Positions 1 to 16,834 of a DNA stretch of 64,000 nt are shown piece after piece. The position numbers and the translations under genes are program-made. The DNA is taken from positions 1,612,001-1,676,000 of the forward strand of contig OZ218957.1 in NCBI GenBank assembly GCA_965112735.1, written 5' to 3'. The notes beneath the pieces are model-generated. The model was not told the origin of the DNA. It did no database searches and worked only from the letters and a program-made list of their open reading frames with translations. Source of the stretch: Phaeosaccion multiseriatum (Eukaryota > Protista > Ochrophyta, other classes). Position 1 is the first letter of the stretch; each line of letters starts with the position of its first letter.

Positions 1-644
1 CTCGTTGGAGGTGATCTCTTGGCCTGCGAGCGTGTGGGCATAGGCCTCTACGATCTGTTGCCATCCAAGGGGGTAATCTCCTCCCCCATGTGGTCTTCCG
101 GGGGTGGTGGGGGGGCCTCCGCTCCTTAGAGCTTGTCTGAGGAGGGGCATATAGAAGTGCGAGTTGGTAGGCGGGAGCGCCGCGTCGCGCTGGTGGCGTA
201 TGGTGTTGCTCCATGTCGTTGGTGCGTGTCCATGCGTGTCTGTTTCGAGTGATGCTGTCTCTTCCTCGTGCGTCGTGGGGGGTGGTCGTACGAGGTCGGC
301 GATGGCCTCGGCCGTGTTGTGGTGGGTCAGTTCCGTCGCGGTGAGGTTTAGGCTTGCGAACTCAGCGCTGATGCGTCGGCTGGCGGATGCTGGCGCTTGT
401 TCGTTGAAGAAGAGGTTCGGGTGTTGCCGTATGGGGGTCGTGGCTGTGAGGTGGGTGTCTTCGTATTCGTCTTGGAGGATGGAGACGATTTGCTCTGTGA
501 TCCCGTGTGCGTTTCTGTGAGTTGACGCGTTGGTGGTTTGGGCTGGATCTGAGGCTCGGAAAGTGGCGGTTGGCCTTTCCGGGCTGCGTGCTCGGGGGGT
601 CCTGCTTCGTCCCCTTGGCCTCGTGGTTGGCTGCATGGGTGCTG
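1..644 (-). mobile_element. 5' part of a 5'-truncated copy (copy 0) of the CRE-like non-LTR retrotransposon; its 3' part lies left of the window
   Basis: 1-644 matches ~14580-15223 of the full-length copy. The match stops at ...catgggtgctg and host zinc-finger repeat sequence (agaagaagcag...) follows. Confidence 0.92.
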
Positions 645-722
645 AGAAGAAGCAGGTCCAAGGAGGATTGTGCACTAGGCACGGAGCTGTGAGAAAGACG
701 TGTACTGTGGAGGGGTGTGAGA

Positions 723-2635
723 TGTATATTAGAGCTTATGGGCTCAGTATTGGAGCGCTCGAGGTAAGTTGTAACCATGTGTAGATGCGTGTATGTGTGG
801 TATTGATGGAGCGTGAGGTGGAGGGGAAGAGGATGGTAAGGGTGGTAGAGTAGAGGATAATGGGGAATGGGAAGGGAGTGAAGGGGGGAGGAGGAGATGA
901 AGGGGTGTGGGAAGGAGTGAGGTGGTGGAGGTGATATGTGAACTAGCCTACTGTGGGTGGTGCGGGTGACAAGGCGTGACTAACTGTGGTTGCTATGCTG
1001 TGTGCTGATGGTCTCGCTGTCTGCTGGCTGGTGTACTCCTGCTCCTCAGGCGGCCGCTCCGTCGATGGCTCCCATGAGCCCCCAGTCGAGGGTTTCTGCT
1101 GCTTCGTGCTGCGTCATGGTGGCTCGAAGGAGGGTGCCATACCTGATCTCCCGCTGTGAGAGGGCGCGTTGAAGGGCGAGGGACAGTTGTTGGCGCAGGA
1201 GGCCCTTGATGGGGCCCGTGGCTGCCGCCGCTGCGGGGCCGAGCCCTCTTGATGCCTTGTGGATGGCCATCGCCTCGATGAGCTCGTCCGTTTGGTGGCC
1301 CAGTCTGCCGTACGTCTCGATTGCAATGCACTTCAGGGTTGAAGTCCCGGGCAGAAAACTGCCCAGGTAAACTGCCCAGGTAGTGGGTGCGCTTGCGTTC
1401 TTCGGCGGCGGCTGCTGCGTGGCCTGGCGTGGTGGAGGCCCGTCCCACGTGAGTGGGGGCGGTGGGGTTGGTGACGGTGATGTCGCAGAGGAGGTTTCTC
1501 CGCAGGGGTGCGTCCGCTCCCGGGAAGCTACCTGCGGGATAGGTCAGGTCCATGCGTAGGTCTCGGCCTGCTCGGGTGCCCGTGGGGCCGTCGAAGCAGG
1601 TCTGGTCCTCTACACGTGCTCCTCCAATGCCCACGCTGTGCATCATCCTCCCGAAGGCCTTGACGAGGAGGTGGTGTGTGTGGTTGTGGAGGCCGGTGCG
1701 GGGGCAGATGGTGGCGTGGGTAGTGCTTGCCGTGCGGGCGCAGCCTGTGCCAAGGCAGGGTGGGGGCGGGTCCGCGTATGGCGTGTTGACACCGAGGTTG
1801 CGACGAAGGGCCATGGTCCATTCTGCGGGGGCCATGGTGTTGTGGCCGTGGGGGAGCGCTCCGAGGAAGGCCATGGCGCCCCTTCCTCGCTGTGAGTGGA
1901 GTCGGGCTGTTGCCATTTCCTGTGTCTCCTCTCCCCTCTGTGCCTCTGCCGGTGTGACGTCGATGGTGGCGATGCTCTGCGTCAGCTCCTCATGGCGGCG
2001 TTTGTGGATGAAGGTGGTGAGGGCCTTCTGGACGCCGTGGGTCGGTTGACGGCCTGCCTGATGGCTCCTGCGCACGTTGCGTCGCGCTGTGTCCTGGGCT
2101 TGGTGGTCAGGCGGCTCGAGTACGCGTGAGCGGGCCTCGTCGAACTGTGCCTGACCCACTGCTTGGATGAGGGGGGCCTCAGGGACCCCCTCCTCGTGCA
2201 GGAGGTTGACGCTGTCGGCGACGCTCTTGAGGGCTCCGTTGGTGAACAGCTGGTCCGGTAGGGCGCTCTCTTGGGAGCCTTCCCGGCGTGCGGTGCGGCT
2301 GAGCAGGGGGGGGAGGGTGAGCATCTTGTTGCCAAGGTATGCTGCTGGGGCGATGTCGTGGAGGCTGGTGAGGCCGAGGCCGCCGAAGCGCCGTGCCGTA
2401 TGCATTTGTAGGCGCTGTGTCTCCGTCCATGGCTCCTCTTGTGCATCTGCGGCCTGCTCCAGAGGGGGGGCATCGGGGAGTCGCATGATGTGGGCCATTG
2501 TCGCTCTGTTGGTGCGGTCTGCCCTGCTGCCGAGGGCGCGTCGGAAGATGGAGGGGTCAATGGCTCTCGCCAGGTGTGTGAGCCTGGCTGGGAGGCATTG
2601 GAGGAGGACGTGGGTGGCCGCCTGGGTGTTGTCCC
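723..2635 (-). mobile_element. CRE-like non-LTR retrotransposon copy A, 5'-truncated (3' UTR, endonuclease, post-RT region), frameshifted
   Basis: Near-identical to copy B from 5513 onward. It starts right after GAGGGGTGTGAGA (710-722). A 13-bp duplication AAACTGCCCAGGT (1356-1368 and 1369-1381) shifts the frame. Confidence 0.95.
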
Positions 2636-2780
2636 GCAAAGCTTGTGCCCACAAAGAGGAGGGTGAAACGCCAGAGCCGTTGATCCCCCTCGGGGCGTGC
2701 CTAGGAAACCGACATTCTTATTATACCCCAGAATGTATGACCGGAAACCCTTAGGCAGGACAATCTACCACACTACCCCC
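2636..2780 (-). repeat. Polypurine tract (2773-2780) and start of the 3' LTR (TGTGGTAG.. from 2772)
   Basis: Minus strand reads GGGGGTAG|TGTGGTAGATTG about 40 nt after the pol stop. TATA-like TATAATAA at 2718-2725. No second LTR in the window to confirm. Confidence 0.6.
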
Positions 2781-2816
2781 AAGCGACAGTTCGAGTCGAC
2801 TCGGAAGCAAATGTGT

Positions 2817-5160
2817 CTATCCGGTGTTTGTCCTCTTGCGCGTGCGCGCAGGTCGCGCCGGAGCGCGGGCCGAAGAAGTGCGGCGATCGGCGCGCTGCTT
2901 CTGGGCTGCCTGTCGTGTCGCAAGGGTGCGGAGATAGGCTCGGACTGCGCTGACTAATTGCTTGTCCTGATGTTTCTGCAGGTAGGTCTCCAGTAAACGT
3001 GGAGTGTCCTCATGCAGTGTCTCGATGGGCTCCTCGCTATTCTCGAGGGCTTCAAAGCCACGCCACTTAACAATGACATGCCATGAACCATCTGCGTGCT
3101 TAACGAGGCCTTCAAAAGCCTCCACCACAAAGTCTTGGGTGTTGTATGAAATCTGCTGTAGTACGTCGGTGGTGACGTTCACGTGAGCACCGCAATAGTA
3201 TCGGAGGCGGCTGACATGTACCTCAGAAGTACGCTTCTTGCCTACCAGCTCTTCCACCTTGTATACGTGCTGCTCAAGGGCTTCAAGTACTCGGCAGGGT
3301 CCATGCCACTTGCCTAGTATCTTGCTTGTGGGCCCTACTGTTGCCACGAGCACATAGACTCCGACCTGAAACAGCGTCTCGCTGTTGAGCTGCTTAGCTC
3401 TGGCCAAGTCCTGACGATGCTCTGCACCACGTCTGCCGCTCATCAGCCTCTGGTTGATGCCATCTCGCTTGTGATCGCGGAGGGTGGTCAAATGACGCTC
3501 CGCTTCGGCGCGCTGCCCCTCCTTCCTCTGATGGAGTTGTGTTGCAAGGGTGTCTCTCTGCGCCGGGGTCAGCTGCAGTAGCCGAACCTTTTGCAGTCGA
3601 TCCGCATCGTGGATCAGAATCGTGTCGAGAGGCCGCTGTGGTATGTGACCGCTGTGCAGCTGGATGGGAGACATGCTAGACCGACTGCTCTTGTTGGAGC
3701 TGTTCTCAACAGCCTCCATCACTGGCAGTAGTTGCGGCCATGTCTCGGGCGGCTGTCGTAGCTCAGACATCATTGATCTCATGATCTTCTGCAATGTCTG
3801 TACACCACGCTCGCCCAATCCTCGACTATATGGGTTGTGTGCTACCACAAAGTGGTGGTTGCACCGCAAGAGCTGACTTAGCTCACGTATCACTTCATTT
3901 AAGAAATGACTGCCTCGGTCACTCTGCCATCTGGGCACTACGCCATGCTGTGCGAACCAGCGCAATAGACCGCGTGCACACACTCGTGCAGTAGCTTCCA
4001 AGCATGGCTCATACATTGACAATGACGAGAAGTCATCAAAGATGCACAGCACTTGCTTCACATGAAGCTTCATGAACCCTTCTGGGGACTCTGCCCATAT
4101 AACTCCATCGCCAATCTTGACGAAGTCAAACCAGATGAGCTGCTGGGGTCCAGTAGCGTGCCATTGAGCTAGCAGGGGGCGAGGCACTCTCTCGCCCTTG
4201 CCGTTGGTGAGGCAGTGGAGACAGTTCTGAACGAGGCTTCGCACGTCCTTGTCTAGCGAGTGCCAAATGAACTTCTCCTTAATAGCACTCAAGGTATTTG
4301 TCTCTCCCTGATGGCCCATCATACCCTGATGGCCAGTCACACACAGTCTCAGGTGCATGTCCTCCGCCTTGGCTCCCACCGAGGGAATCCAAATGCGGGT
4401 GCTGTCAGCGGGGTTGCTCGTCGGATGGCACGCTCGAATCAACCCGTCGTCGCCAACTGATGAAAGGAGCAGGCGGCGCCCGTTCTCTCCCACCTCCTTG
4501 CTAGCCTGCTGGAGCTCCTGAAGAGCGTCTGCCTGCAGACTGGCAATCTCAGTCTTGGAGGGCCAAGTGAAGTCGTCACACATAGTGTCAAACACTTGCA
4601 TGGGCCCAAACTTGCCCAAAGCGAGCACACTAGGGGTGAGGCTCACCGGTTGCGTGTACCGCCTGCTAATGGGGTCGGCCCAATCATGGAGATGACCAGG
4701 GAAGTGGACAATGACGTAGTCAAAGCTCTGAAGGCGCACGGCCTGACGCTGCAGCCTGTCCCTCATAGGCTTAGTCATGCCCGGGTACCTGCTGTCGTTG
4801 CTCATCATGAACGCCAGGTTGCGATGGTCGCAAAAGATGTGCACTTTCTGTGCCCCGACCAAGGCGTACTCGTTCTGGATCAAGCCTCGGAGTGTCGCGT
4901 CTCCTTCCTTGTCTATGGTGGCACGCCTCAGCTCTGCGCCTTCAAAAGCGCCTGAGCCGAAGGCCACCGGGATGTGGTTCATCTCATGTACCGGAAGGCA
5001 CAGCTCTTTGGGGTCGATGTATGTAATCATACATCCCCAGTAGAGGTCGCTAGCATCTGGGAATACCAGTGCCAGTTTGGTTGGGTCTGGGTGCGACAGC
5101 ACCGTGTTCTGTGCAAGGACGCGCTTAATCTGGAAGAAAGCGTCGTCGTGCTCTGTGGTC
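2817..5160 (-). CDS. pol: Partial gypsy Pol: RT connection, RNase H, integrase (HHCC, DDE, GPY/F-like), chromodomain
   Basis: Motifs DAFFQIK..LSHPD, FPDASDLYWG, DKE, FCDHRNL, ADPISR; GHQGMMGH..CLHC; WFDF, SDRGSHF, GLGER; WHGPCRV; VEAF..HVIVKWRGFEALENSEEP. Confidence 0.9.
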
Positions 5161-5162
5161 CC

Positions 5163-5486
5163 AGCCCACCCCCAGCAGCAGCAACCACAACCGATCTCAA
5201 CGACACGGCAACAACCAGCACCCGCCGCCAGGAGATCTACCACGCCCGCCAGCGAGACAACAGGCCCTACAACAGCACCACCCCCCACCGCGACCAGCCC
5301 AGCACCCATGCAGCCAACCACGAGGCCAAGGGGACGAAGCAGGACCCCCCGAGCACGCAGCCCGGAAAGGCCAACCGCCACTTTCCGAGCCTCAGATCCA
5401 GCCCAAACCACCAACGCGTCAACTCACAGAAACGCACACGGGATCACAGAGCAAATCGTCTCCATCCTCCAAGACGACACGAAGAC
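5163..5486 (+). mobile_element. Inverted fragment of the non-LTR element's 5' coding region
   Basis: Reverse complement of ~15036-15360 with a few substitutions (AHPQQQQPQPISTTRQQ...IVSILQD). Confidence 0.92.
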
Positions 5487-5512
5487 GTGGGAGACACATC
5501 GGGGGTGTGAGA

Positions 5513-8500
5513 TGTATATTAGAGCTTATGGGCTCAGTATTGGAGCGCTCGAGGTAAGTTGTAACCATGTGTAGATGCGTGTATGTGTGGTATTGATGGA
5601 GCGTGATGTGGAGGGGAAGAGGATGGTAAGGGTGGTAGAGTAGAGGATAATGGGGAATGGGAAGGGAGTGAGGGGGGGAGGAGGAGATGAAGGGGTGTGG
5701 GAAGGAGTGAGGTGGTGGAGGTGATATGTGAACTATCCTACTGTGGGTGGTGCGGGTGACAAGGCGTGACTAACTGTGGTTGCTATGCTGTGTGCTGATG
5801 GTCTCGCTGTCTGCTGGCTGGTGTACTCCTGCTCCTCAGGCGGCCGCTCCGTCGATGGCTCCCATGAGCCCCCAGTCGAGGGTTTCTGCTGCTTCGTGCT
5901 GCGTCATCGTGGCTCGAAGGAGGGTGCCATACCTGATCTCCCGCTGTGAGAGGGCGCGTTGAAGGGCGAGGGACAGTTGTTGGCGCAGGAGGCCCTTGAT
6001 GGGGCCCGTGGCTGCCGCCGCTGCGGGGCCGAGCCCTCTTGATGCCTTGTGGATGGCCATCGCCTCGATGAGCTCGTCCGTTTGGTGGCCCAGTCTGCCG
6101 TACGTCTCGATTGCAATGCACTTCAGGGTTGAAGTCCCGGGCAGAAAACTGCCCAGGTAGTGAATGCGCTTGCGCTCTTCGGCGGCGGCTGCTGCGTGGC
6201 CTGGCGTGGTGGAGGCCCGTCCCACGTGGGTGGGGGCGGTGGGGTTGGTGACGGTGATGTCGCAGAGGAGGTTTCTCCGCAGGGGTGCGTCCGCTCCCGG
6301 GAAGCTACCTGCGGGATAGGTCAGATCCATGCGTAGGTCTCGGCCTGCTCGGGTGCCCGTGGGGCCGTCGAAGCAGGTCTGGTCCTCTACACGTGCTCCT
6401 CCAATGCCCACGCTGTGCATCATCCTCCCGAAGGCCTTGACGAGGAGGTGGTGTGTGTGGTTGTGGAGGCCGGTGCGGGGGCAGATGGTGGCGTGGGTGG
6501 TGCTTGCCGTGCGGGCGCAGCCTGTGCCGAGGCAGGGTGGGGGCGGGTCCGCGTATGGCGTGTTGACACCGAGGTTGCGACGAAGGGCCATGGTCCATTC
6601 TGCGGGGGCCATGGTGTTGTGGCCGTGGGGGAGCGCTCCGAGGAAGGCCATGGCGCCCCTTCCTCGCTGTGAGTGGAGTCGGGCTGTTGCCATTTCCTGT
6701 GTCTCCTCTCCCCTCTGTGCCTCTGCCGGTGTGACGTCGATGGTGGCGATGCTCTGCGTCAGCTCCTCATGGCGGCGTTTGTGGATGAAGGTGGTGAGGG
6801 CCTTCTGGACGCCGTGGGTCGGTTGACGGCCTGCCTGATGGCTCCTGCGCACGTTGCGTCGCGCTGTGTCTTGGGCTTGGTGGTCAGGCGGCTCGAGTAC
6901 GCGTGAGCGGGCCTCGTTAAACTGTGCCTGACCCACTGCTTGGATGAGGGGGGCCTCAGGGACCCCCTCCTCGTGCAGGAGGTTGACGCTGTCGGCGACG
7001 CTCTTGAGGGCTCCGTTGGTGAACAGCTGGTCCGGTAGGGCGCTCTCTTGGGAGCCGTCCCGGCGTGCGGTGCGGCTGAGCAGGGGGGGGAGGGTGAGCA
7101 TCTTGTTGCCAAGGTATGCTGCTGGGGCGATGTCGTGGAGGCTGGTGAGGCCGAGGCCGCCGAAGCGCCGTGCCGTATGCATTTGTAGGCGCTGTGTCTC
7201 CGTCCATGGCTCCTCTTGTGCATCTGCGGCCTGCTCCAGAGGGGGGGCATCGGGGAGGCGCATGATGTGGGCCAGTGTCGCCCTGTTGGTGCGGTCTGCC
7301 CTGCTGCCGAGGGCGCGTCGGAAGATGGAGGGGTCAATGGCTCTCGCCAGGTGTGTGAGCCTGGCTGGGAGGCATTGGAGGAGGACGAGGGTGGCCGCCT
7401 GGGTGTTGTCCCACTCGCTGCAGTGTTTGGCGAGTTGGAGGTAGCCCCTGGGGTCTTCTTGGCCGAGGATGTTGCGGAGGTACTCTTCGATGTACTCCTC
7501 CGTGCCGACGGGGATGCCGGCTACCACGGTACCCTCGGTGGCAAGTGTGGCGCCCTGCCGTTGGGCGTGGTCCCTGTCAGCCTGTGTTGGCTGCTTGCCT
7601 TTGCCCATGAGGTAAACCGTTTTCCTCTCGTTGAACTCGAGGCCCAAGCCTCGGAATTGGGCTTGGAGATGGGCATGGCGTGGGGCGTAGGTCTGTAGGG
7701 GTGCGTCGGGTTCCAGCTGGTCCATGAGGTCGTCTGCGTAGGCGGAGATGGTGGGGCGGTTCGCTGCGGTGTCGGCTGTGTTCTGAACTTTCAGCACTGG
7801 GTGGATGGCGGCTGCGAACATGAGAGGCCCTTCTGGTGCTCCTTGGTTGACTCCGGAGCTCTGGTGGATGGTCTGGGTGCCGTCTGGTGTGAGGGCGTTG
7901 TGGGCGGAGGCGTGGGAGAGGCTGGCGATGGCGTAGTTGATGCCTGCTGGGTCGATGGTAGGGAGTGCGCCTGAGGCAAGGACGCCTCTGGCACGCGACA
8001 CGCGGGTGTAGGCCTTGGTGATGTCATGCAGCACGACGGTTTTGCCGGCATCGTGCGCTAGCTGGGCTGCTGCGGCGTGTGTTTCCCCTCCGCCTCTGAC
8101 CGCTACCGCTAGCTGTCCTGCGCTTCTGAGCTCTAGGCCCACCCTGTCCGCGATGAGCTTCATGTGACAGCTCTCCACGAGGCTGCGGTAGAGGTTGGGG
8201 GATGTCACAGGACGCGCTTTCTCGCCGAGGGCTGCGGCGCTGGTGCTGAACCACCGTTTGGCGAGCTGTGGAGGCAGTGGAGTGTCCCCCGTTCGGAGCA
8301 GCTCGTAGGTGTCAGTCAGAGCCTCCACGATTGCGTACTCCTGGGGGCTGTCCGGGGGGTACTTGACGTGGCTCGCCCTGCGCCCGTCTGCTCCTTGGCC
8401 CTTCCAGTAGTTGACCCTCCGGTAGGTCAGCAGCATGGCTGTGCTGATCTCCTCTCTGGTGACGTCGTTGCCATTCTCGGGGTGCTCCTGCACCTGGGTT

Positions 8501-8843
8501 CTGGCGTACTCCCTGGCTGCTGTTGCTGCTGTGTTGATCTCTTCGAGGCTCTCGTCGACGTGCGCTTGCTGGAGGCGTCGAAAGGTCTCGTGTGTGGGAG
8601 GGAGGTGGCCGTCTCTGCTCTTTGTGCTGAGCCTCGCCGCGGCCTTGTGCAGGCCTCCGGGTTTGGTGAGCAGGTGGGCGCAGGTTTCTCTCCGTCGCTC
8701 CTCTGTCTGTGCCTGTGCTGGGGGTGGTGGGCGGCGTGCGTGTGCTGTGGCTATCGCTGCTTGTGCGAGTGGGGCGATGTCGAGGTCGAGGACCATCTGT
8801 ATCCGCTGCTGGCGGCTGTAGGCTCCGTCTTTAGAGAAGAGCA
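5513..8843 (-). mobile_element. CRE-like non-LTR retrotransposon copy B, 5'-truncated, with intact RT and endonuclease frame (5836-8843)
   Basis: Flanked by GGGGTGTGAGA (5502-5512) and AGGGGTGTGAGA (8844-8855). Uninterrupted ~1000-aa frame. Confidence 0.95.
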
Positions 8844-9267
8844 AGGGGTGTGAGAAGCATCAGATCCAAGGAGGACTGTGCACTAGGCATGGAGCTGTGG
8901 TCAAGAGGTGTACTGTGGAGGGGTGTGAGATGAGGGGTGTGAGATGTATATTAGAGCTTATGGGCTCAGTATTGGAGCGCTCGAGGTAAGTTGTAACCAT
9001 GTGTAGATGCGTGTATGTGTGGTATTGATGGAGCGTGATGTGGAGGGGAAGAGGATGGTAAGGGTGGTAGAGTAGAGGATAATGGGGAATGGGAAGGGAG
9101 TGAGGGGGGGAGGAGGAGATGAAGGGGTGTGGGAAGGAGTGAGGTGGTGGAGGTGATATGTGAACTATCCTACTGGGGGTGGTGCGGGTGACAAGGCGTG
9201 ACTAACTGTGGTTGCTATGCTGTGTGCTGATGGTCTCGCTGTCTGCTGGCTGGTGTACTCCTGCTCC

Positions 9268-12200
9268 TCAGGCGGCCGCTCCGTCGATGGCTCCCATGAG
9301 CCCCCAGTCGAGGGTTTCTGCTGCTTCGTGCTGCGTCATCGTGGCTCGAAGGAGGGTGCCATACCTGATCTCCCGCTGTGAGAGGGCGCGTTGAAGGGCG
9401 AGGGACAGTTGTTGGCGCAGGAGGCCCTTGATGGGGCCCGTGGCTGCCGCCGCTGCGGGGCCGAGCCCTCTTGATGCCTTGTGGATGGCCATCGCCTCGA
9501 TGAGCTCGTCCGTTTGGTGGCCCAGTCTGCCGTACGTCTCGATTGCAATGCACTTCAGGGTTGAAGTCCCGGGCAGAAAACTGCCCAGGTAGTGAATGCG
9601 CTTGCGCTCTTCGGCGGCGGCTGCTGCGTGGCCTGGCGTGGTGGAGGCCCGTCCCACGTGGGTGGGGGTGGTGGGGTTGGTGACGGTGATGTCGCAGAGG
9701 AGGTTTCTCCGCAGGGGTGCGTCCGCTCCCGGGAAGCTACCTGCGGGATAGGTCAGATCCATGCGTAGGTCTCGGCCTGCTCGGGTGCCCGTGGGGCCGT
9801 CGAAGCAGGTCTGGTCCTCTACACGTGCTCCTCCAATGCCCACGCTGTGCATCATCCTCCCGAAGGCCTTGACGAGGAGGTGGTGTGTGTGGTTGTGGAG
9901 GCCGGTGCGGGGGCAGATGGTGGCGTGGGTGGTGCTTGCCGTGCGGGCGCAGCCTGTGCCGAGGCAGGGTGGGGGCGGGTCCGCGTATGGCGTGTTGACA
10001 CCGAGGTTGCGACGAAGGGCCATGGTCCATTCTGCGGGGGCCATGGTGTTGTGGCCGTGGGGGAGCGCTCCGAGGAAGGCCATGGCGCCCCTTCCTCGCT
10101 GTGAGTGGAGTCGGGCTGTTGCCATTTCCTGTGTCTCCTCTCCCCTCTGTGCCTCTGCCGGTGTGACGTCGATGGTGGCGATGCTCTGCGTCAGCTCCTC
10201 ATGGCGGCGTTTGTGGATGAAGGTGGTGAGGGCCTTCTGGACGCCGTGGGTCGGTTGACGGCCTGCCTGATGGCTCCTGCGCACGTTGCGTCGCGCTGTG
10301 TCTTGGGCTTGGTGGTCAGGCGGCTCGAGTACGCGTGAGCGGGCCTCGTCGAACTGTGCCTGACCCACTGCTTGGATGAGGGGGGCCTCAGGGACCCCCT
10401 CCTCGTGCAGGAGGTTGACGCTGTCGGCGACGCTCTTGAGGGCTCCGTTGGTGAACAGCTGGTCCGGTAGGGCGCTCTCTTGGGAGCCGTCCCGGCGTGC
10501 GGTGCGGCTGAGCAGGGGGGAGGGTGAGCATCTTGTTGCCAAGGTATGCTGCTGGGGCGATGTCGTGGAGGCTGGTGAGGCCGAGGCCGCCGAAGCGCCG
10601 TGCCGTATGCATTTGTAGGCGCTGTGTCTCCGTCCATGGCTCCTCTTGTGCATCTGCGGCCTGCTCCAGAGGGGGGCATCGGGGAGGCGCATGATGTGGG
10701 CCAGTGTCGCCCTGTTGGTGCGGTCTGCCCTGCTGCCGAGGGCGCGTCGGAAGATGGAGGGGTCAATGGCTCTCGCCAGGTGTGTGAGCCTGGCTGGGAG
10801 GCATTGGAGGAGGACGAGGGTGGCCGCCTGGGTGTTGTCCCACTCGCTGCAGTGTTTGGCGAGTTGGAGGTAGCCCCTGGGGTCTTCTTGGCCGAGGATG
10901 TTGCGGAGGTACTCTTCGATGTACTCCTCCGTGCCGACGGGGATGCCGGCTACCACGGTACCCTCGGTGGCAAGTGTGGCGCCCTGCCGTTGGGCGTGGT
11001 CCCTGTCAGCCTGTGTTGGCTGCTTGCCTTTGCCCATGAGGTAAACCGTTTTCCTCTCGTTGAACTCGAGGCCCAAGCCTCGGAATTGGGCTTGGAGATG
11101 GGCATGGCGTGGGGCGTAGGTCTCTAGGGGTGCGTCGGGTTCCAGCTGGTCCATGAGGTCGTCTGCGTAGGCGGAGATGGTGGGGCGGTTCGCTGCGGTG
11201 TCGGCTGTGTTCTGAACTTTCAGCACTGGGTGGATGGCGGCTGCGAACATGAGAGGCCCTTCTGGTGCTCCTTGGTTGACTCCGGAGCTCTGGTGGATGG
11301 TCTGGGTGCCGTCTGGTGTGAGGGCGTTGTGGGCGGAGGCGTGGGAGAGGCTGGCGATGGCGTAGTTGATGCCTGCTGGGTCGATGGTAGGGAGTGCGCC
11401 TGAGGCTAGGACGCCTCTGGCACGCGACACGCGGGTGTAGGCCTTGGTGATGTCATGCAGCACGACGGTTTTGCCGGCATCGTGCGCTAGCTGGGCTGCT
11501 GCGGCGTGTGTTTCCCCTCCGCCTCTGACCGCTACCGCTAGCTGTCCTGCGCTTCTGAGCTCTGGGCCCACCCTGTCCGCGATGAGCTTCATGTGACAGC
11601 TCTCCACGAGGCTGCGGTAGAGGTTGGGGGATGTCACAGGACGCGCTTTCTCGCCGAGGGCTGCGGCGCTGGTGCTGAACCACCGTTTGGCGAGCTGTGG
11701 AGGCAGTGGAGTGTCCCCCGTTCGGAGCAGCTCGTAGGTGTCAGTCAGAGCCTCCACGATTGCGTACTCCTGGGGGCTGTCCGGGGGGTACTTGACGTGG
11801 CTCGCCCTGCGCCCGTCTGCTCCTTGGCCCTTCCAGAAGTTGACCCTCCGGTAGGTCAGCAGCATGGCTGTGCTGATCTCCTCTCTGGTGACGTCGTTGC
11901 CATTCTCGGGGTGCTCCTGCACCTGGGTTCTGGCGTACTCCCTGGCTGCTGCTGCTGCTGTGTTGATCTCTTCGAGGCTCTCGTCGACGTGCGCTTGCTG
12001 GAGGCGTCTAAAGGTCTCGTGTGTGGGAGGGAGGTGGCCGTCTCTGCTCTTTGTGCTGAGCCTCGCGGCGGCCTTGTGCAGGCCTCCGGGTTTGGTGAGC
12101 AGGTGGGCGCAGGTTTCTCTCCGTCGCTCCTCTGTCTGTGCCTGTGCTGGGGGTGGTGGGCGGCGTGCGTGTGCTGTGGCTATCGCTGCTTGTGCGAGTG

Positions 12201-14427
12201 GGGCGATGTCGAGGTCGAGGACCATCTGTATCCGCTGCTGGCGGCTGTAGGCTCCGTCTTTAGAGAAGAGCATGGCAGGGAGGAGGTGGTGGAAGACATC
12301 CCATGCCAGAAGGGTGTGGAGGGTGGCGTCGGTGGGGCCGTTCTTGTGGGCCCTCAGCGCCCTGTTCCAGTTGTTGAGCGCTCTTTGCTGTAAGCTGATA
12401 ATCGAGCTGACGTGGCGGGGGTTGCACTGCGCTACTGTCTCAAACACGAGTGTTGAGAGGATGGTACCCTGCGGGTCCAGGGCCCCTAGGCGGAGGACGT
12501 TTGGGTGCTGCATGGGCCATCCTTCCTCGGGTGTATCGTCGTTGGCTGGCCCTTCTCCGTCCCCTCCGTCCCCGCCGCTACCTCCTTGGCCTCTGCTCCG
12601 TCCTCCTCCCCCTCGTCTCGCTGCTGCTGCTGTGGTTCCTTGCGTGCGTGTGCTATCTCCCCCTGCCCTTTCTCTCTGAGGTCCCCTCTCTGCTGCTGCT
12701 CCTTGTCCGTTTCCTTCCCCCCTCCCTCGTCCTCCTCTTCCTCCTTCTACTCCACTTGGCGCTGCTGCGATTGCGCCTCCTCCTCCTCCTCCTCCTTCTT
12801 CCGCGTGCCCTCGCCCTCCTCCTCTGCCCGTGGGGGTGGTGGGTTGGTACGGGTTGAGCCTGGCCGTTGCTGTCGTGTGCTGGGGCGTTGCCGTACGCGA
12901 CGGGTCCTCGTTTGGGTCTGGGCCTAGATAGGCGTTCTCGAGGTCGTTGAGGGGGCCTTGGTAGGCCGATGCTGCGTTGCCTTGGGTGAGGATGGTCCTG
13001 AGGGCGGGGATGGCTCGTTGAGCTTGGTAGCCAGCCATGCAGCCTTGCGCGGGGCAGGGGAGGTTGCCTGGTGGTATGACGGGCTGCTGGTTGGCTCTCC
13101 TCAGTGTGGCTTGGTCGTTCAGGTGGTGAAGGAGGCACGCGGGGTGAACGGTGTGTTGGCAGCGTCGGGTGCGTACTGGCCACTCCGTGGTTGGTGCGAT
13201 GAAAGGGGGGTCCGCGTCTGACATGCATATGCAGCATATCGGGGCTGGGGGGGCGGTAGGTTGGGGTGGGGGTGTGTGTCGGGTGGTGGGGGGTGGCTGG
13301 GACTGGCGGCGTCGCCCTTGGCTGGCCTGCGCGTGCTGCTGATGCGAGTCTCTGCGCTCCCTCGCTAGGCGATCCCTTGCGCGGCCCATAGCTCTCCCTC
13401 CTTGTGCTGTGATGGCCTGCTCGATCGTGTGCCGGTAGCAGGGGTTGCGGCAGTAGGGGCAGAGGTGGTCGTTGCGGTTGGGGTACGTGCTCATGACTCC
13501 CAATGCGCAGTGGTTGTGCACGTGATGTTCGTCTTCGTGCATGGCGACTTGTGCTTGGCCAGTGAGCGGTTCCATACACACCGGGCAGTTGGGTAGCTCC
13601 TCGTTGTTGGTGGGGTCGCCTCCTCCTTCTGCTTCGTCACCTCCTCCCTCTGCTTGCCCTTCCCCTCCTTCTGCCGCTGCTTCCCGTGCCAGTGCTGGGC
13701 GCTCTCCTCCGCCTCTGCTGTTTTCGCCCTCTCCCCCCCCTGCTACTACTCTTCCGTCGCGGTCTCCTCGTCCCCCTCCCCTGTGTCCCGCTCGCTCTCC
13801 TCTCCCTTCTCCCTCCGGGTCGTGCTCCCGTGTAGTGTCTGTCCCACCTGCTCTTGTCGGTGGGGGCATGCTGCGAGCTCGTGGTGGGATGGTTGACGAT
13901 GCCGGGAGGTGTGCTGCTTCGTATGCTCGTATGCATGTGTGGCATATGGGCTGCCGTAGGCCTGCTTGCGGGAAGCTTCTGAGGAGGGATCTGCCGGAGT
14001 TTCTGTGGGCCAGGTTGCCGCATCCACGTATACAGTCACGTAGCTGATACGTTCTGTTCTGTGGTCCGCTCTGTGGGCCGTTGGCGCGGTACCACAGGAT
14101 TGACGCGGCCTGGGGGTGGTGTTCGCGCATCCATCGTTCCCACTCTCGGCCGCGGTTGGGGTGGTGGCTCAACTGGTGCCTGTTGAGGCGGTCTCTGGAC
14201 CTGCCGACCGTGACGAAGGTGTCATTGCACTGTTCGAAGTTGCAGAGGACTCCCGTGGCGATGTAGTTGTTGTCAATGTTCCTGCGGTACGCTGTGGTGT
14301 TGTTGTGGGTGTCGTCCGTCTGTGGCGTGGTTGTGTCACTGTGGGTGGGGGTGTTGGCGGTCCTGGTGCGGTTCCCCGGGGGGCCTGCCTCGTGCGTAAG
14401 GCGAGGGCTTGCCCCGGCGCCCACCAC
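9268..14427 (-). CDS. Retrotransposon polyprotein: C2H2 finger, 2 RING fingers, reverse transcriptase, CCHC knuckle, restriction-like endonuclease
   Basis: RT: HDITKAYTRVSR, GVNQGAPEGPLMF, AYADDL, GLEFNERKT, GIPVG, RFGGLGL..PAAYLG. Endonuclease region: CLGTGC..HATIC, RMDL, CDITVTNP, EERKRIHY, AIETYGRLG. The start is uncertain: the frame is open from 14502 and the first ATG is at 14130. Confidence 0.92.
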   Translation of the reverse strand: MVGAGASPRLTHEAGPPGNRTRTANTPTHSDTTTPQTDDTHNNTTAYRRNIDNNYIATGVLCNFEQCNDTFVTVGRSRDRLNRHQLSHHPNRGREWERWMREHHPQAASILWYRANGPQSGPQNRTYQLRDCIRGCGNLAHRNSGRSLLRSFPQAGLRQPICHTCIRAYEAAHLPASSTIPPRARSMPPPTRAGGTDTTREHDPEGEGRGERAGHRGGGRGDRDGRVVAGGGEGENSRGGGERPALAREAAAEGGEGQAEGGGDEAEGGGDPTNNEELPNCPVCMEPLTGQAQVAMHEDEHHVHNHCALGVMSTYPNRNDHLCPYCRNPCYRHTIEQAITAQGGRAMGRARDRLARERRDSHQQHAQASQGRRRQSQPPPTTRHTPPPQPTAPPAPICCICMSDADPPFIAPTTEWPVRTRRCQHTVHPACLLHHLNDQATLRRANQQPVIPPGNLPCPAQGCMAGYQAQRAIPALRTILTQGNAASAYQGPLNDLENAYLGPDPNEDPSRTATPQHTTATARLNPYQPTTPTGRGGGRGHAEEGGGGGGGAIAAAPSGVEGGRGGRGRGEGNGQGAAAERGPQRERAGGDSTRTQGTTAAAARRGGGGRSRGQGGSGGDGGDGEGPANDDTPEEGWPMQHPNVLRLGALDPQGTILSTLVFETVAQCNPRHVSSIISLQQRALNNWNRALRAHKNGPTDATLHTLLAWDVFHHLLPAMLFSKDGAYSRQQRIQMVLDLDIAPLAQAAIATAHARRPPPPAQAQTEERRRETCAHLLTKPGGLHKAAARLSTKSRDGHLPPTHETFRRLQQAHVDESLEEINTAAAAAREYARTQVQEHPENGNDVTREEISTAMLLTYRRVNFWKGQGADGRRASHVKYPPDSPQEYAIVEALTDTYELLRTGDTPLPPQLAKRWFSTSAAALGEKARPVTSPNLYRSLVESCHMKLIADRVGPELRSAGQLAVAVRGGGETHAAAAQLAHDAGKTVVLHDITKAYTRVSRARGVLASGALPTIDPAGINYAIASLSHASAHNALTPDGTQTIHQSSGVNQGAPEGPLMFAAAIHPVLKVQNTADTAANRPTISAYADDLMDQLEPDAPLETYAPRHAHLQAQFRGLGLEFNERKTVYLMGKGKQPTQADRDHAQRQGATLATEGTVVAGIPVGTEEYIEEYLRNILGQEDPRGYLQLAKHCSEWDNTQAATLVLLQCLPARLTHLARAIDPSIFRRALGSRADRTNRATLAHIMRLPDAPLWSRPQMHKRSHGRRHSAYKCIRHGASAASASPASTTSPQQHTLATRCSPSPLLSRTARRDGSQESALPDQLFTNGALKSVADSVNLLHEEGVPEAPLIQAVGQAQFDEARSRVLEPPDHQAQDTARRNVRRSHQAGRQPTHGVQKALTTFIHKRRHEELTQSIATIDVTPAEAQRGEETQEMATARLHSQRGRGAMAFLGALPHGHNTMAPAEWTMALRRNLGVNTPYADPPPPCLGTGCARTASTTHATICPRTGLHNHTHHLLVKAFGRMMHSVGIGGARVEDQTCFDGPTGTRAGRDLRMDLTYPAGSFPGADAPLRRNLLCDITVTNPTTPTHVGRASTTPGHAAAAAEERKRIHYLGSFLPGTSTLKCIAIETYGRLGHQTDELIEAMAIHKASRGLGPAAAAATGPIKGLLRQQLSLALQRALSQREIRYGTLLRATMTQHEAAETLDWGLMGAIDGAAA

Positions 14428-15641
14428 GGTGTGGCCATGGTGTTGGCGAAGGGGGAGGTGGTGGTGTTGTTGGTGTGGTCGCGTAGGGCGTGGCCGTAGC
14501 GCTCAACGATGGCTTGGACGTCGGGTAATACCGCGATGAGTTCCTCCTGTCGTGAGGCGGTGATGTAGTCGTTGACCAACTCGTTGGAGGTGATCTCTTG
14601 GCCTGCGAGCGTGTGGGCATAGGCCTCTACGATCTGTTGCCATCCAAGGGGGTAATCTCCTCCCCCATGTGGTCTTCCGGGGGTGGTGGGGGGGCCTCCG
14701 CTCCTTAGAGCTTGTCTGAGGAGGGGCATATAGAAGTGCGAGTTGGTAGGCGGGAGCGCCGCGTCGCGCTGGTGGCGTATGGTGTTGCTCCATGTCGTTG
14801 GTGCGTGTCCATGCGTGTCTGTTTCGAGTGATGCTGTCTCTTCCTCGTGCGTCGTGGGGGGTGGTCGTACGAGGTCGGCGATGGCCTCGGCCGTGTTGTG
14901 GTGGGTCAGTTCCGTCGCGGTGAGGTTTAGGCTTGCGAACTCAGCGCTGATGCGTCGGCTGGCGGATGCTGGCGCTTGTTCGTTGAAGAAGAGGTTCGGG
15001 TGTTGCCGTATGGGGGTCGTGGCTGTGAGGTGGGTGTCTTCGTATTCGTCTTGGAGGATGGAGACGATTTGCTCTGTGATCCCGTGTGCGTTTCTGTGAG
15101 TTGACGCGTTGGTGGTTTGGGCTGGATCTGAGGCTCGGAAAGTGGCGGTTGGCCTTTCCGGGCTGCGTGCTCGGGGGGTCCTGCTTCGTCCCCTTGGCCT
15201 CGTGGTTGGCTGCATGGGTGCTGGGCTGGTCGCTGTGGGGGGTGGTGCTGTTGTAGGGCCTGTTGTCTCGCTGGCGGGCGTGGTAGATCTCCTGGCGGCT
15301 GGTGCTGTTTGTTGCCGTGTCGTTGAGATCGGTTGTGGTTGCTGCTGCTGGGGGTGGGCTTCCGCTGCTGTTGCTGTGGGTTCCGTGAGTGCTGGTGGGA
15401 GCTGTGGGTCCTGCGGGAGGGTGTTGCGGGGTGCTGCGGCCGCTGGTGGAGCCGTGATGGGGGTGGGCACGCCTTCCCGTGCTGGTGTTTGGCGAATTGC
15501 TGCTGCCGCTGCCCGTCTCTCCCTTCTTTCGAGCCGCTGCTGATCGCGGCTCATAGGTGGCTCCTGCTGGGTTGCTGTGAGGTTTGCTGGTGTCTCCTGG
15601 GCTCCGGGGGGCCGCGTGGCCCCCCTGTCGTCCCCTTCCAT
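14169..15641 (-). CDS. Retrotransposon upstream ORF (Pro/Thr/Ala-rich); possibly the N-terminus of one continuous ORF
   Basis: 490-aa ORF with GCCACCATGG start context, overlapping the RT ORF, which lies in the -1 frame. Confidence 0.7.
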   Translation of the reverse strand: MEGDDRGATRPPGAQETPANLTATQQEPPMSRDQQRLERRERRAAAAAIRQTPAREGVPTPITAPPAAAAPRNTLPQDPQLPPALTEPTATAAEAHPQQQQPQPISTTRQQTAPAARRSTTPASETTGPTTAPPPTATSPAPMQPTTRPRGRSRTPRARSPERPTATFRASDPAQTTNASTHRNAHGITEQIVSILQDEYEDTHLTATTPIRQHPNLFFNEQAPASASRRISAEFASLNLTATELTHHNTAEAIADLVRPPPTTHEEETASLETDTHGHAPTTWSNTIRHQRDAALPPTNSHFYMPLLRQALRSGGPPTTPGRPHGGGDYPLGWQQIVEAYAHTLAGQEITSNELVNDYITASRQEELIAVLPDVQAIVERYGHALRDHTNNTTTSPFANTMATPWWAPGQALALRTRQAPRGTAPGPPTPPPTVTQPRHRRTTPTTTPQRTAGTLTTTTSPRESSATSNSAMTPSSRSAGPETASTGTS

Positions 15642-15763
15642 GGTGGCCCTGTCTTAAGCAGAAAAAAAGATGGGGTGTGTGTGAGAAGCAGCGGGTCCGA
15701 GGAGGATTGTGCACTAGGCATGGAGCTGTGGTCAAGAGGTGTACTGTGGAGGGGTGTGAGAAG

Positions 15764-15820
15764 TATATTAGAGCTTATGGGCTCAGTATTGGAGCGCTCG
15801 AGGTAAGTTGTAACCATGTG
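15764..15820 (-). mobile_element. 57-bp extreme 3'-end insertion of the same retrotransposon
   Basis: tatattagagc...taaccatgtg is identical to the element's 3' terminus and is flanked by AGGGGTGTGAGAAG at 15750-15763 and 15821-15834. Confidence 0.93.
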
Positions 15821-16834
15821 AGGGGTGTGAGAAGCATCCGATCCAAGGAGGATTATGCATTAGGCATGGAGCTGTGGTCAAGATGTGTACTGTGGAGGGG
15901 TGTGAGAAGCAAGCAAGAGGTGGATGTGATGGAATGTGTTGGCGTCATGCTCGAATGAAAGGGGAGGGAGCGGAGCAGACGGGGAAGATAACCCAGGGCA
16001 CGCCTAAACCCAAGCGAGGAGCTGCCACCGACATCGATACGAGAGGAAGGAAGAGGGCGAAGTTCCCCCCTTCAGTTGAGGGAGGGGAGAGGCAGCAGGA
16101 AGAGAAGGCAGCAGCGGAGGAGGATGGGGATGGAGTAGGTTTGCTTGCGAGGCTGGGGCTTCATGTCGGGGATGAGATTCAGCTTCCCAATGGTCTGTGG
16201 AGAGAGCTGGAAGATGCTGCTGCCGACGCTGCCATAGCCTGCTGGGGCCACCGGGATAGGCAGCTGTCGAATGGCGTGGTGGTGTCTGTGGGCCAGAGTA
16301 AGGTGTTGCTGCTGCCCCATTACGCTGTGCGCACCAAGAGGAAGGGGACCAGCCTGGAGAGCACGATTCGAGGCTTTGTGTCTGCCTACCAGCGCTATCG
16401 CTCAGGAGGAGGAGGGGGTGACGAGGATGACGAGAAGCAGCAGGACGAGTGGGAGGTGCTGGAGGAGAGCATGGTGGCGGCGAGTGAGAAGAAGAGGCGG
16501 GGACGGAAGGCGCTGCGAGCGTGCGTGCGTGTGGGGCGCGTGGCAGGGGCTTGTGCTGGTGCTGATACCTCGGGACTGGGGATGTAGTGACGCGAAGCCG
16601 TCCGCCTCATCGCCTGTCTTTCGGGGCCTGCCGACGGAGCTTGTGGCTCTCGGGGCCCGTACTTACGGAGCTTTTGCGAGGGTCGACGACCGACCGGCGG
16701 AAGAGGAAAAAGGAAGAGGAAGAGGAAGAGGAAGAGGAAGCGGAAGAAGCAGGGCTACCGCCATACGGGCATACGGGCAGTGTGCTTTGACTGTCCCTTT
16801 CCCTTCTCTGCGGGGCTACTGGAGCGACCACCGC

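Follow-up and report, generated by a model that had tools for sequence, protein, structure and literature searches.

The window that we analyzed, 64,000 nucleotides of Phaeosaccion multiseriatum DNA (G000:C8:1,612,001-1,676,000; assembly of 67 Mb in 22 contigs; G+C 54-66% in 2-kb windows), begins with 16 kb of a head-to-tail array of one retrotransposon of the non-LTR type (LTR, long terminal repeat), oriented on the minus strand. Between neighboring copies of the array lies an 87-bp repeat unit or just the 11-nt sequence GGGGTGTGAGA, and the 87-bp units encode, on the plus strand, Zf_WRKY19 zinc fingers (PF24906) of a tandemly repeated host gene family. Within the array lies a composite insertion, chimera A, in which the 3' end of the non-LTR element is fused to 2.5 kb of a Ty3/gypsy LTR retrotransposon and to part of the element's own 5' region in inverted orientation. 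One target-site duplication (TSD), GGGGTGTGAGA, encloses the whole composite. Coordinates below follow window numbering on the plus strand; element sense corresponds to the minus strand, and element positions refer to copy C, the 6,718-nt reference.

Anatomy of the composite insertion

The non-LTR part of chimera A, 723-2635, covered the end of the reverse transcriptase (RT) region, the CCHC/endonuclease domain and the 3' untranslated region (UTR), and carried lineage variants in common with copy a of L024. Its 3' end, ...TATACA, adjoined GGGGTGTGAGA, as in every other copy. At joint 1 (2635/2636) the element passed into gypsy sequence with no filler letters between the parents. The gypsy piece, 2,522 nt in total (2636-5157), had the same orientation as the non-LTR element and comprised part of an LTR and an internal region with a G-rich polypurine-like tract before the LTR, a spacer, a stop codon and the 3' part of pol, where Pfam matched RT_RNaseH, Integrase_H2C2, rve and Chromo (RNase H, integrase H2C2 and core domains, and a chromodomain). 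It had no 5' LTR, its 3' LTR was cut at nt 137 of 248, and it was not flanked by a TSD of its own. At joint 2 the parents shared an imperfect CCACCCC microhomology next to a 5-nt filler. The 14-15 nt between the inverted fragment and the right TSD (5487-5500/5501) had no exact second copy in the window or the genome, and the sole near-match in the genome contained two mismatches.

The inverted self fragment has the geometry of twin priming. Position 627, the 3'-most RNA position of this piece, faces the TSD; the piece is antisense and comes from RNA upstream of the direct part, 4822-6718; and it begins just past the TSD copy on the minus strand, at the point where an 11-bp staggered cut exposes a 3'-OH through its second nick.

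Joints 1 and 2 each occurred once in the 67-Mb assembly, and a metagenome scan for joint 1 gave no match. Splice signals were absent at joint 1, where gypsy reads GC|AT and the element GT|GG. Two further ideas on this joint were discarded. A parental lineage lacking AGCGAGT would make joint 1 a plain TGC microhomology, and all copies compared read CTGCAGCGAGTGGGAC. Hypermutation near the joint had been suggested by three substitutions that seemed private among 6 copies, and by read depth at least two of these (2498 and 2505) are common genome letters. A 13-nt tandem duplication (AACTGCCCAGGTA) at ~1358-1383, in the endonuclease-coding region, was found in copy A alone among the six copies compared.

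Table 1. Parts of chimera A and other features of the array and its target repeat (window numbering; element positions refer to copy C).
Feature	Position	Strand	Remarks
Copy Z of the non-LTR element	1-644	-	5'-truncated at element position 440; continues beyond the window start
One unit of the 87-bp target repeat, coding for a Zf_WRKY19 zinc finger	645-722	+	Matches units 8844-8930 and 15821-15907; Pfam PF24906 on plus-strand reading frames
Left TSD, GGGGTGTGAGA	712-722	+	11 nt; end of the repeat unit at 645-722
Chimera A (composite insertion)	723-5501	-	Between two GGGGTGTGAGA copies
Non-LTR 3'-terminal part, 1,913 nt	723-2635	-	Element positions 4822-6718; 98.2% identity to copy C (BLAST)
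Gypsy 3' LTR, nt 1-137 of 248	2636-2772	-	100% identity to the first 137 nt of each LTR in L021 and L022
Gypsy internal region	2773-5157	-	Collinear with L021:~4886-7270; one difference, at 2968
Filler GTCCC at joint 2, 5 nt	5158-5162		Matches neither parent (three-way comparison of chimera, gypsy and element)
Inverted piece of the element's 5' region	5163-5486	+	Element positions 303-627, in ORF1; 98.5% identity to 15036-15360 in reverse complement
14-15 nt, GTGGGAGACACATC plus G	5487-5501		Between the inverted fragment and the right TSD
Right TSD, GGGGTGTGAGA	5502-5512	+	3' end of the next copy (B) directly after
Copy B	5513-8843	-	Element positions 3388-6718; plain 5'-truncated insertion, control
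Near-empty insertion	8931-8933 (region 8920-8944)	-	Two GGGGTGTGAGA copies with TGA alone between them
Copy C, full-length reference, 6,718 nt	8945-15662	-	ORF1 14169-15641; ORF2 9268-14427 (1,719 aa)
58-nt micro-copy	15763-15820	-	Array member

The gypsy passenger and its long terminal repeat

Two full-length copies of the gypsy element, L021 (L021:1602-7518 = C3:4,748,101-4,754,017) and L022, were 5.9 kb long with 248-nt LTRs running TGTGG...GCACA. The two LTRs were identical in L021 and nearly identical in L022, and L021 was flanked by a 4-bp TSD, CCGA, and retained an intact open reading frame (ORF) of 1,755 aa. By its sequence features, namely the order of RNase H, integrase and chromodomain, the TG..CA LTRs and the short TSD, the passenger is assigned to the Ty3/gypsy chromoviruses; its family is young and probably active. 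An exact-protein look-up of the gypsy polyprotein returned no record. The piece in chimera A differed from intact L021 at 1 of 2,522 nt and, because the full-length copies have 248-nt LTRs, ends at LTR nt 137. The 3' LTR in which this breakpoint falls makes up ~4% of gypsy length and is the expected start of an RNA-derived copy.

An earlier, sequence-only reading of this locus had described a composite between two target motifs, and all of its parts were present after slight corrections of coordinates (TSD 712-722; gypsy to 5157, then filler). It had also proposed that the gypsy piece enters a putative 3' LTR at ~137 nt, stops in pol and lacks a 5' LTR and TSD, and comparison with full-length copies agreed on each point, with nt 137 of 248 as the point of entry and two 248-nt LTRs plus CCGA in the bona fide element L021. 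A complete LTR at 2772-2644, which would have spoken for ordinary integration followed by deletion, is not what lies there, full LTRs being 248 nt.

Several features were considered as markers of the RNA end within the LTR. Complementarity between the primer-binding site and the LTR, as in Tf1-style self-priming, was best at LTR nt 141-152 (10/12 positions); the sister family changes this pairing without compensation, and Tf1-like self-priming was dropped as a locator of the R start for want of covariation. LTR divergence showed no clean step that would mark U3|R, and none of the other gypsy copies among the scored LTR matches ended at nt 137. Recurrent ends at nt 190 were rejected as an RNA end, as another element had inserted there. 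Two gypsy LTRs of different subfamilies (L010:334-1447, L018:1-742 (C14)) were broken at nt 190 by a ~1.1-kb insert, with LTR nt 185-190 duplicated at the insert in L010; the common break suggests that another mobile element prefers this site. We also rejected a processed pseudogene of the HERV-W type, as the gypsy piece lacks an A-tract, begins within pol at its 5' end and sits in the middle of a non-LTR insertion.

An R2-like enzyme that targets a coding repeat

Copy C contained two overlapping ORFs, and the 1,719-aa ORF2 protein comprised RING-like fingers, an RT, a CCHC motif and an R2-like endonuclease. The RT domain corresponded to Pfam RVT_1, and a profile of 19 distant relatives matched the RTs of human L1 ORF2p and R2 structures (E 1e-16 to 1e-10). 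Downstream of the RT were a CCHC knuckle and a PD-(D/E)xK nuclease, whose D..D..K residues are conserved in relatives; in alignments of these relatives the last 270 ORF2 residues contained invariant H, C, H, D and D and near-invariant K and E. An AlphaFold model of the C-terminal part of ORF2 had a pLDDT (predicted local-distance difference test score) of 87, and its top seven PDB matches were all R2 proteins (probability 0.99-1.00, template-modeling score ~0.4-0.5), followed by viral PD-(D/E)xK cap-snatching nucleases and Prp8. A Pfam search detected no nuclease of the apurinic/apyrimidinic endonuclease (APE) type. A word-based protein search with the RT and endonuclease returned zero matches, and an exhaustive HMMER search found 667 relatives, the closest at no more than 31% identity. 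The enzyme is thus R2-like in architecture and site-specific. We do not place the element in R2 proper, which is specific for ribosomal DNA (rDNA), because its target is a protein-coding repeat rather than 28S rDNA, it has two overlapping ORFs instead of a single one and its sequence similarity to R2 is remote (E 0.25 with a single sequence as query); its clade may be CRE-like or NeSL-like.

The family has at least 108 candidate 3' ends genome-wide and is young. We surveyed ~44 of its insertions, on contigs C8 and C1, and all of them followed (G)GGGTGTGAGA or its C1 variant inside the 87-bp Zf_WRKY19 repeat. The target gene family, of Zf_WRKY19 type, was present on at least these two contigs (window 15584-16587, L029:666-2495, L036, L037), and the C1 paralogues have a diverged repeat unit (TCTCGCACCCC...) yet are still a target for the element.

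Discontinuous and inverted copies elsewhere in the family

Six of the ~44 insertions, about one in seven and chimera A among them, were discontinuous or inverted. L024:6975-7357 (L024b) was a textbook case of twin priming, with a direct segment, 6396-6718, and an inverted one, 6240-6309, beginning 3 nt past the TSD. L029:3761-5261 combined a snap-back palindrome with a 12-nt loop and a jump from 6340 to 5031, and L029:6935-8227 consisted of four segments, two of them inverted; the same-sense internal jumps in L029 were 6340 to 5031 and 6547 to 859. In L034:4867-7295 the terminal TATACA alone (6713) was followed by a jump 4.5 kb upstream to 2227, continuation to the 5' end and an inverted piece, and in L034:7385-8381 a jump from 6680 to 6128 followed 39 nt of the 3' end. 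The inverted pieces in L029 and L034 always lay against the TSD and, like that of L024b, had the geometry described above for the inverted piece of chimera A. All internal jumps in the family were in sense orientation and at internal sites, which fits a change of template by a polymerase rather than random DNA rearrangement.

Foreign DNA was found in chimera A only, 1 of the ~44 insertions. Two further candidates for foreign cargo, L029:666-2495 and the 83-85-nt gaps of L037, proved to be host gene flanks and divergent target units.

Other members of the array and its surroundings include very short copies. Micro-copies of the element's last 39-75 nt occurred at regular target sites (15763-15820; L031:6239-6290; L027:6047-6121, 6199-6251; L034:7385-7423), which shows a very early stop of first-strand synthesis. 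The near-empty insertion at 8920-8944 looks like an aborted round of target-primed reverse transcription (TPRT), because the TG of its TGA equals the first two letters of the element end. Copy Z was 100% identical to 14580-15223 of copy C, with its 3' part in L031:6369-10000. Further upstream (L030:7735-10000 plus L031:1-4041, C8:1,597,734-1,604,041), a full-length element was split at 2110-2117, with an 8-bp overlap, by ~6.3 kb of foreign sequence.

Read support for the joints

Read evidence was assessed at the level of contigs; those listed are a few dozen of ~9,800 pieces, and the filtered records leave gaps. In runs X1 and X2, both from one sample, 83-nt contigs bridged joint 3 over 5449-5531, the exact span of the words unique to that joint. 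Their depths, 55 and 98, correspond to about a single copy, because contigs of the three-copy gypsy lineage had depths of 217-259 and 380-509. Joint 2 (5164) was covered by a single X2 contig of depth 5 with one mismatch, and by none from X1 or X3 among the contigs listed. No listed contig bridged joint 1, where filtering may have left gaps. In run X5, a second sample with the same organism label, the non-LTR element was deep and the gypsy lineage almost missing (window 2771-5108); this lack may reflect a strain difference or a shallow run.

A proposed single aberrant round of target-primed reverse transcription

We read the composite as one aberrant TPRT event of an R2-type element, in which synthesis switched onto gypsy RNA and the 5' end was closed by twin priming, and we regard the chances for and against this reading as evenly balanced. 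In such an event, the plus strand would be nicked after GGGGTGTGAGA, and the 3'-OH would prime cDNA synthesis on element RNA, starting at the 3' terminus and reaching position 4822. The nascent cDNA would then move to a gypsy transcript at LTR nt 137 and continue there for 2.5 kb, as far as the part of pol that encodes RNase H. A second-strand nick 11 nt away would provide another 3'-OH, to which ~14 untemplated nt would be added and which would then prime a second cDNA on element RNA, from 627 to 303 (twin priming). The two cDNA 3' ends would join at the imperfect CCACCCC microhomology with the GTCCC filler, and gap filling would leave the 11-nt duplication on both sides. We infer that the gypsy template was RNA, that a single event produced all of the joints and that the steps occurred in this order.

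Several lines of evidence favor this account. First, the single TSD, the normal 3' terminus at a normal target and the gypsy piece in element orientation argue for one event. Second, joint 1 is seamless and every mark of entry by integrase has been lost, as expected for a template switch; the position of the breakpoint in the 3' LTR, documented in vivo jumps by this class of enzyme and the family's own jumps point in the same direction. Third, the event is recent, and both parts have hardly diverged from active relatives: the gypsy piece shows just one difference in 2,522 nt from an intact element with identical LTRs, and the element part contains only variants that a sister lineage also has, plus one 13-nt duplication.

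Other observations weigh against the switch. The donor RNA was left at internal position 4822, unlike the end-to-end jumps of R2 in vitro. Joint 1 bears no A-tract, intron loss or CCA mark that would identify the gypsy piece as RNA-derived. LTR nt 137 is a candidate for the RNA's 3' end: a TATA-like box at LTR nt 47-55 would allow R at ~75-137, but C137/A138 could equally be an initiator. The right TSD is also the target of neighboring copy B, which makes the flanks less independent than at a solitary site. Among the contigs listed, independent read contigs bridge joint 3 only, and there is one foreign cargo among ~44 insertions. Finally, an octamer that adjoins both parental breakpoints, as we discuss below, is absent from the chimera, which a simple switch leaves unexplained because a plain microhomology switch would have kept one copy.

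The sequence-only reading had likewise proposed that a single TPRT event copied a foreign RNA. The locus does look like one R2-type insertion, and that part of the proposal stands; the inverted self fragment, for which that reading gave no explanation, fits twin priming. The exit from the donor at internal position 4822, and not at its 5' end, differs from the end-to-end jumping of R2. The survey of 5' junctions that it suggested found non-self cargo in chimera A and in no other of the ~44 insertions. Natural site-specific delivery of cargo is too strong a name for the locus, a lone by-product that was dead on arrival, 1 of ~44.

A shared octamer at both breakpoints

Both parents carry the octamer CAGCGAGT beside their breakpoints: in the element (window 2621-2650, 10842-10860) it abuts the donor breakpoint on the 5' side, and in the gypsy LTR (L021:7400-7420) it lies 3' of the entry point at a distance of 2 nt. 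An 8-nt match at most 15 nt from two random breakpoints arose in 0.17% of trials (chance ~0.002), and none of four in-family jumps had a comparable match. In the element RNA the octamer forms the 3' arm of a predicted local hairpin of 6 bp, the end of which coincides with the breakpoint. We rejected an RNA hairpin as the reason for the break in the donor, as the region as a whole folds no better than shuffles (z = 0.35). Its presence at both breakpoints may be coincidental, or may reflect either a docking contact or a cleavage context common to both sites. In the case of docking, short shared motifs would hold a foreign RNA at a paused TPRT complex. That this locus records an in vivo RNA-to-RNA switch by an R2-type enzyme whose choice of acceptor was guided by the shared octamer CAGCGAGU seems to us rather improbable. 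If it were true, the enzyme could bring a multi-kb RNA without its 3' UTR into a defined 11-bp site.

Alternative origins of the gypsy piece

The gypsy sequence may have entered as DNA. After twin-primed TPRT, the gap could have been closed by end joining that trapped gypsy DNA, either extrachromosomal or incomplete cDNA trimmed at both ends, with no RNA switch. In yeast, cDNA of the retrotransposon Ty1 is known to be captured at breaks, and gypsy is young and probably active, so its cDNA should exist; a linear gypsy cDNA resected by 111 nt would likewise end within the LTR, joint 1 has no A-tract, and the filler and imperfect microhomology of joint 2 are typical of end joining. We nonetheless judge capture unlikely, given that joint 1 is seamless, that the sense orientation matches the prediction of a switch and would be a 50% coincidence under capture, and that every other discontinuity in the family is a jump in the same sense on the element's own RNA, a pattern that points to RT over repair. 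Entry by normal integration would require a full gypsy element to have inserted into a twin-primed copy and then to have lost its 5' 3.3 kb, the last 111 nt of its 3' LTR and flanking element sequence through deletions or ectopic recombination. At least three events would have to fit within the time of 1 substitution in 2.5 kb of gypsy, both gypsy termini and the TSD would have to disappear, and the assembly holds no intermediate form and no second copy of joints 1 and 2. Such a history is quite unlikely in our view, even though tandem arrays rearrange readily and LTR elements integrate normally into this one, as in the copy 8 kb upstream that is split at 2110-2117 by 6.3 kb (L030/L031).

An RNA already chimeric before insertion, in which a gypsy RNA fragment was ligated or misprocessed onto element 3' RNA and then used in ordinary TPRT, predicts the same final structure as a switch, including the orientation and the seamless joint. 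RNA ligation ahead of L1 retrotransposition is documented for U6/L1 (PMC6789731), and the octamer by both breakpoints could mark a common cleavage or pairing context. We consider this origin very unlikely: joint 1 has no splice signals, and repeated production of such an RNA would give more copies, whereas no second copy exists. The remaining alternative is that reads were mis-joined in an array whose repeats are 98-100% identical, and it is true that joint 3 alone is bridged among the contigs listed, with only the depth-5 X2 contig over 5164. Filtered contig records leave gaps of that kind, two runs provide contigs across joint 3 at roughly the depth of a single copy, the three joints lie within 4.8 kb that single long reads can cover, and the structure is coherent in its TSD, twin-priming geometry and microhomology; an assembly artefact is thus highly improbable.

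Comparison with known systems

Among the closest precedents for the proposed template switch onto gypsy RNA is Drosophila R2, for which in vivo template jumps onto U12 small nuclear RNA and tRNAs, as well as tandem R1 arrays separated only by the TSD, have been described (Eickbush and Eickbush 2012, PMC3414825). Like R2, the element here is a site-specific non-LTR retrotransposon with a restriction-like endonuclease, and the foreign copy lies in sense at the 5' side within a normal target; like the R1 arrays (PMC3414825), its head-to-tail copies can be parted only by the duplicated target. By contrast, R2 carries 80-150 nt of a small RNA whose copy begins at the genuine 3' end (CCA) and joins a full-length R2. 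Here the cargo is 2.5 kb of an LTR retrotransposon and bears no RNA-end mark; the copy to which it is joined is internally truncated and has a further inversion at its 5' end. The present element also lives in an alga and targets a protein-coding repeat instead of rDNA.

Chimeras with several switches are known from other elements. L1 recombines with diverse RNAs (2026 catalogue of chimeras, PMC13174262), and Magnaporthe MGL/WEIRD/Mg-SINE form bi- and tripartite chimeras with double switches inside one TSD (PMC2104539). These share with chimera A a 5'-truncated LINE 3' end, another transcript in sense on its 5' side, one TSD and several switches per event, and the rule drawn for L1 and MGL, by which a sense segment marks a switch or ligation and an antisense segment twin priming, is usable here as well. 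L1 and MGL are non-specific elements (L1 with an APE-type endonuclease) and their acceptors are mostly short non-coding RNAs, whereas here a site-specific R2-type enzyme joined a sense foreign and an antisense self segment in one insertion. The twin-priming 5' inversions of L1 (Ostertag and Kazazian 2001, as cited in PMC13174262) resemble the inverted piece of chimera A in lying at the 5' end against the TSD, in their origin from upstream RNA with the 3'-most position on the target side, and in their filler or microhomology. Relative to the L1 inversions, the differences here are an R2-like nuclease, an 11-bp staggered cut, the recurrence of the event and 2.5 kb of foreign sequence between the arms.

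Copying of LTR-element RNA by non-LTR machinery is represented by the HERV-W processed pseudogenes made by L1, which contain U3-R plus poly(A) and a truncated 3' LTR (PMC5016936, PMC5537654). The truncated 3' LTR is common to both cases. HERV-W pseudogenes, however, stand alone and have a mapped R end and a poly(A) tract on which L1 primes, whereas the gypsy piece is an internal passenger with no A-tract. In engineered R2-based transgene insertion (PRINT, PMC11371274), as at this locus, an R2-type protein writes a multi-kb heterologous sequence into its own specific target; the PRINT cargo RNA bears the R2 3' UTR in cis, while here the link would have been made during copying, in a single accident.

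If the gypsy piece was copied from RNA, the locus is a natural record of a site-specific R2-type enzyme that quit its own transcript in mid-copy and wrote kilobases of unrelated RNA into its target, and it bears on the origin of chimeric retroelements and new non-autonomous elements and on the by-products of such enzymes in targeted gene insertion. Taken alone, the locus is of modest weight, because mechanisms of this kind have been described for L1, MGL and R2 and because the RNA template is one that we infer. The greater value may lie in the family as a whole, whose insertions form a natural library of the ways in which TPRT goes wrong. Template-switch chimeras have precedents in L1, MGL and R2, and antisense 5' segments are by general agreement products of twin priming. 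To our knowledge, template-switch chimeras with a passenger as large as 2.5 kb are rare, and twin priming has hardly been described for the R2-like endonuclease class. What differs here is the enzyme class and host, the coding-repeat target, the 2.5-kb LTR passenger and the combination of a sense foreign with an antisense self segment.

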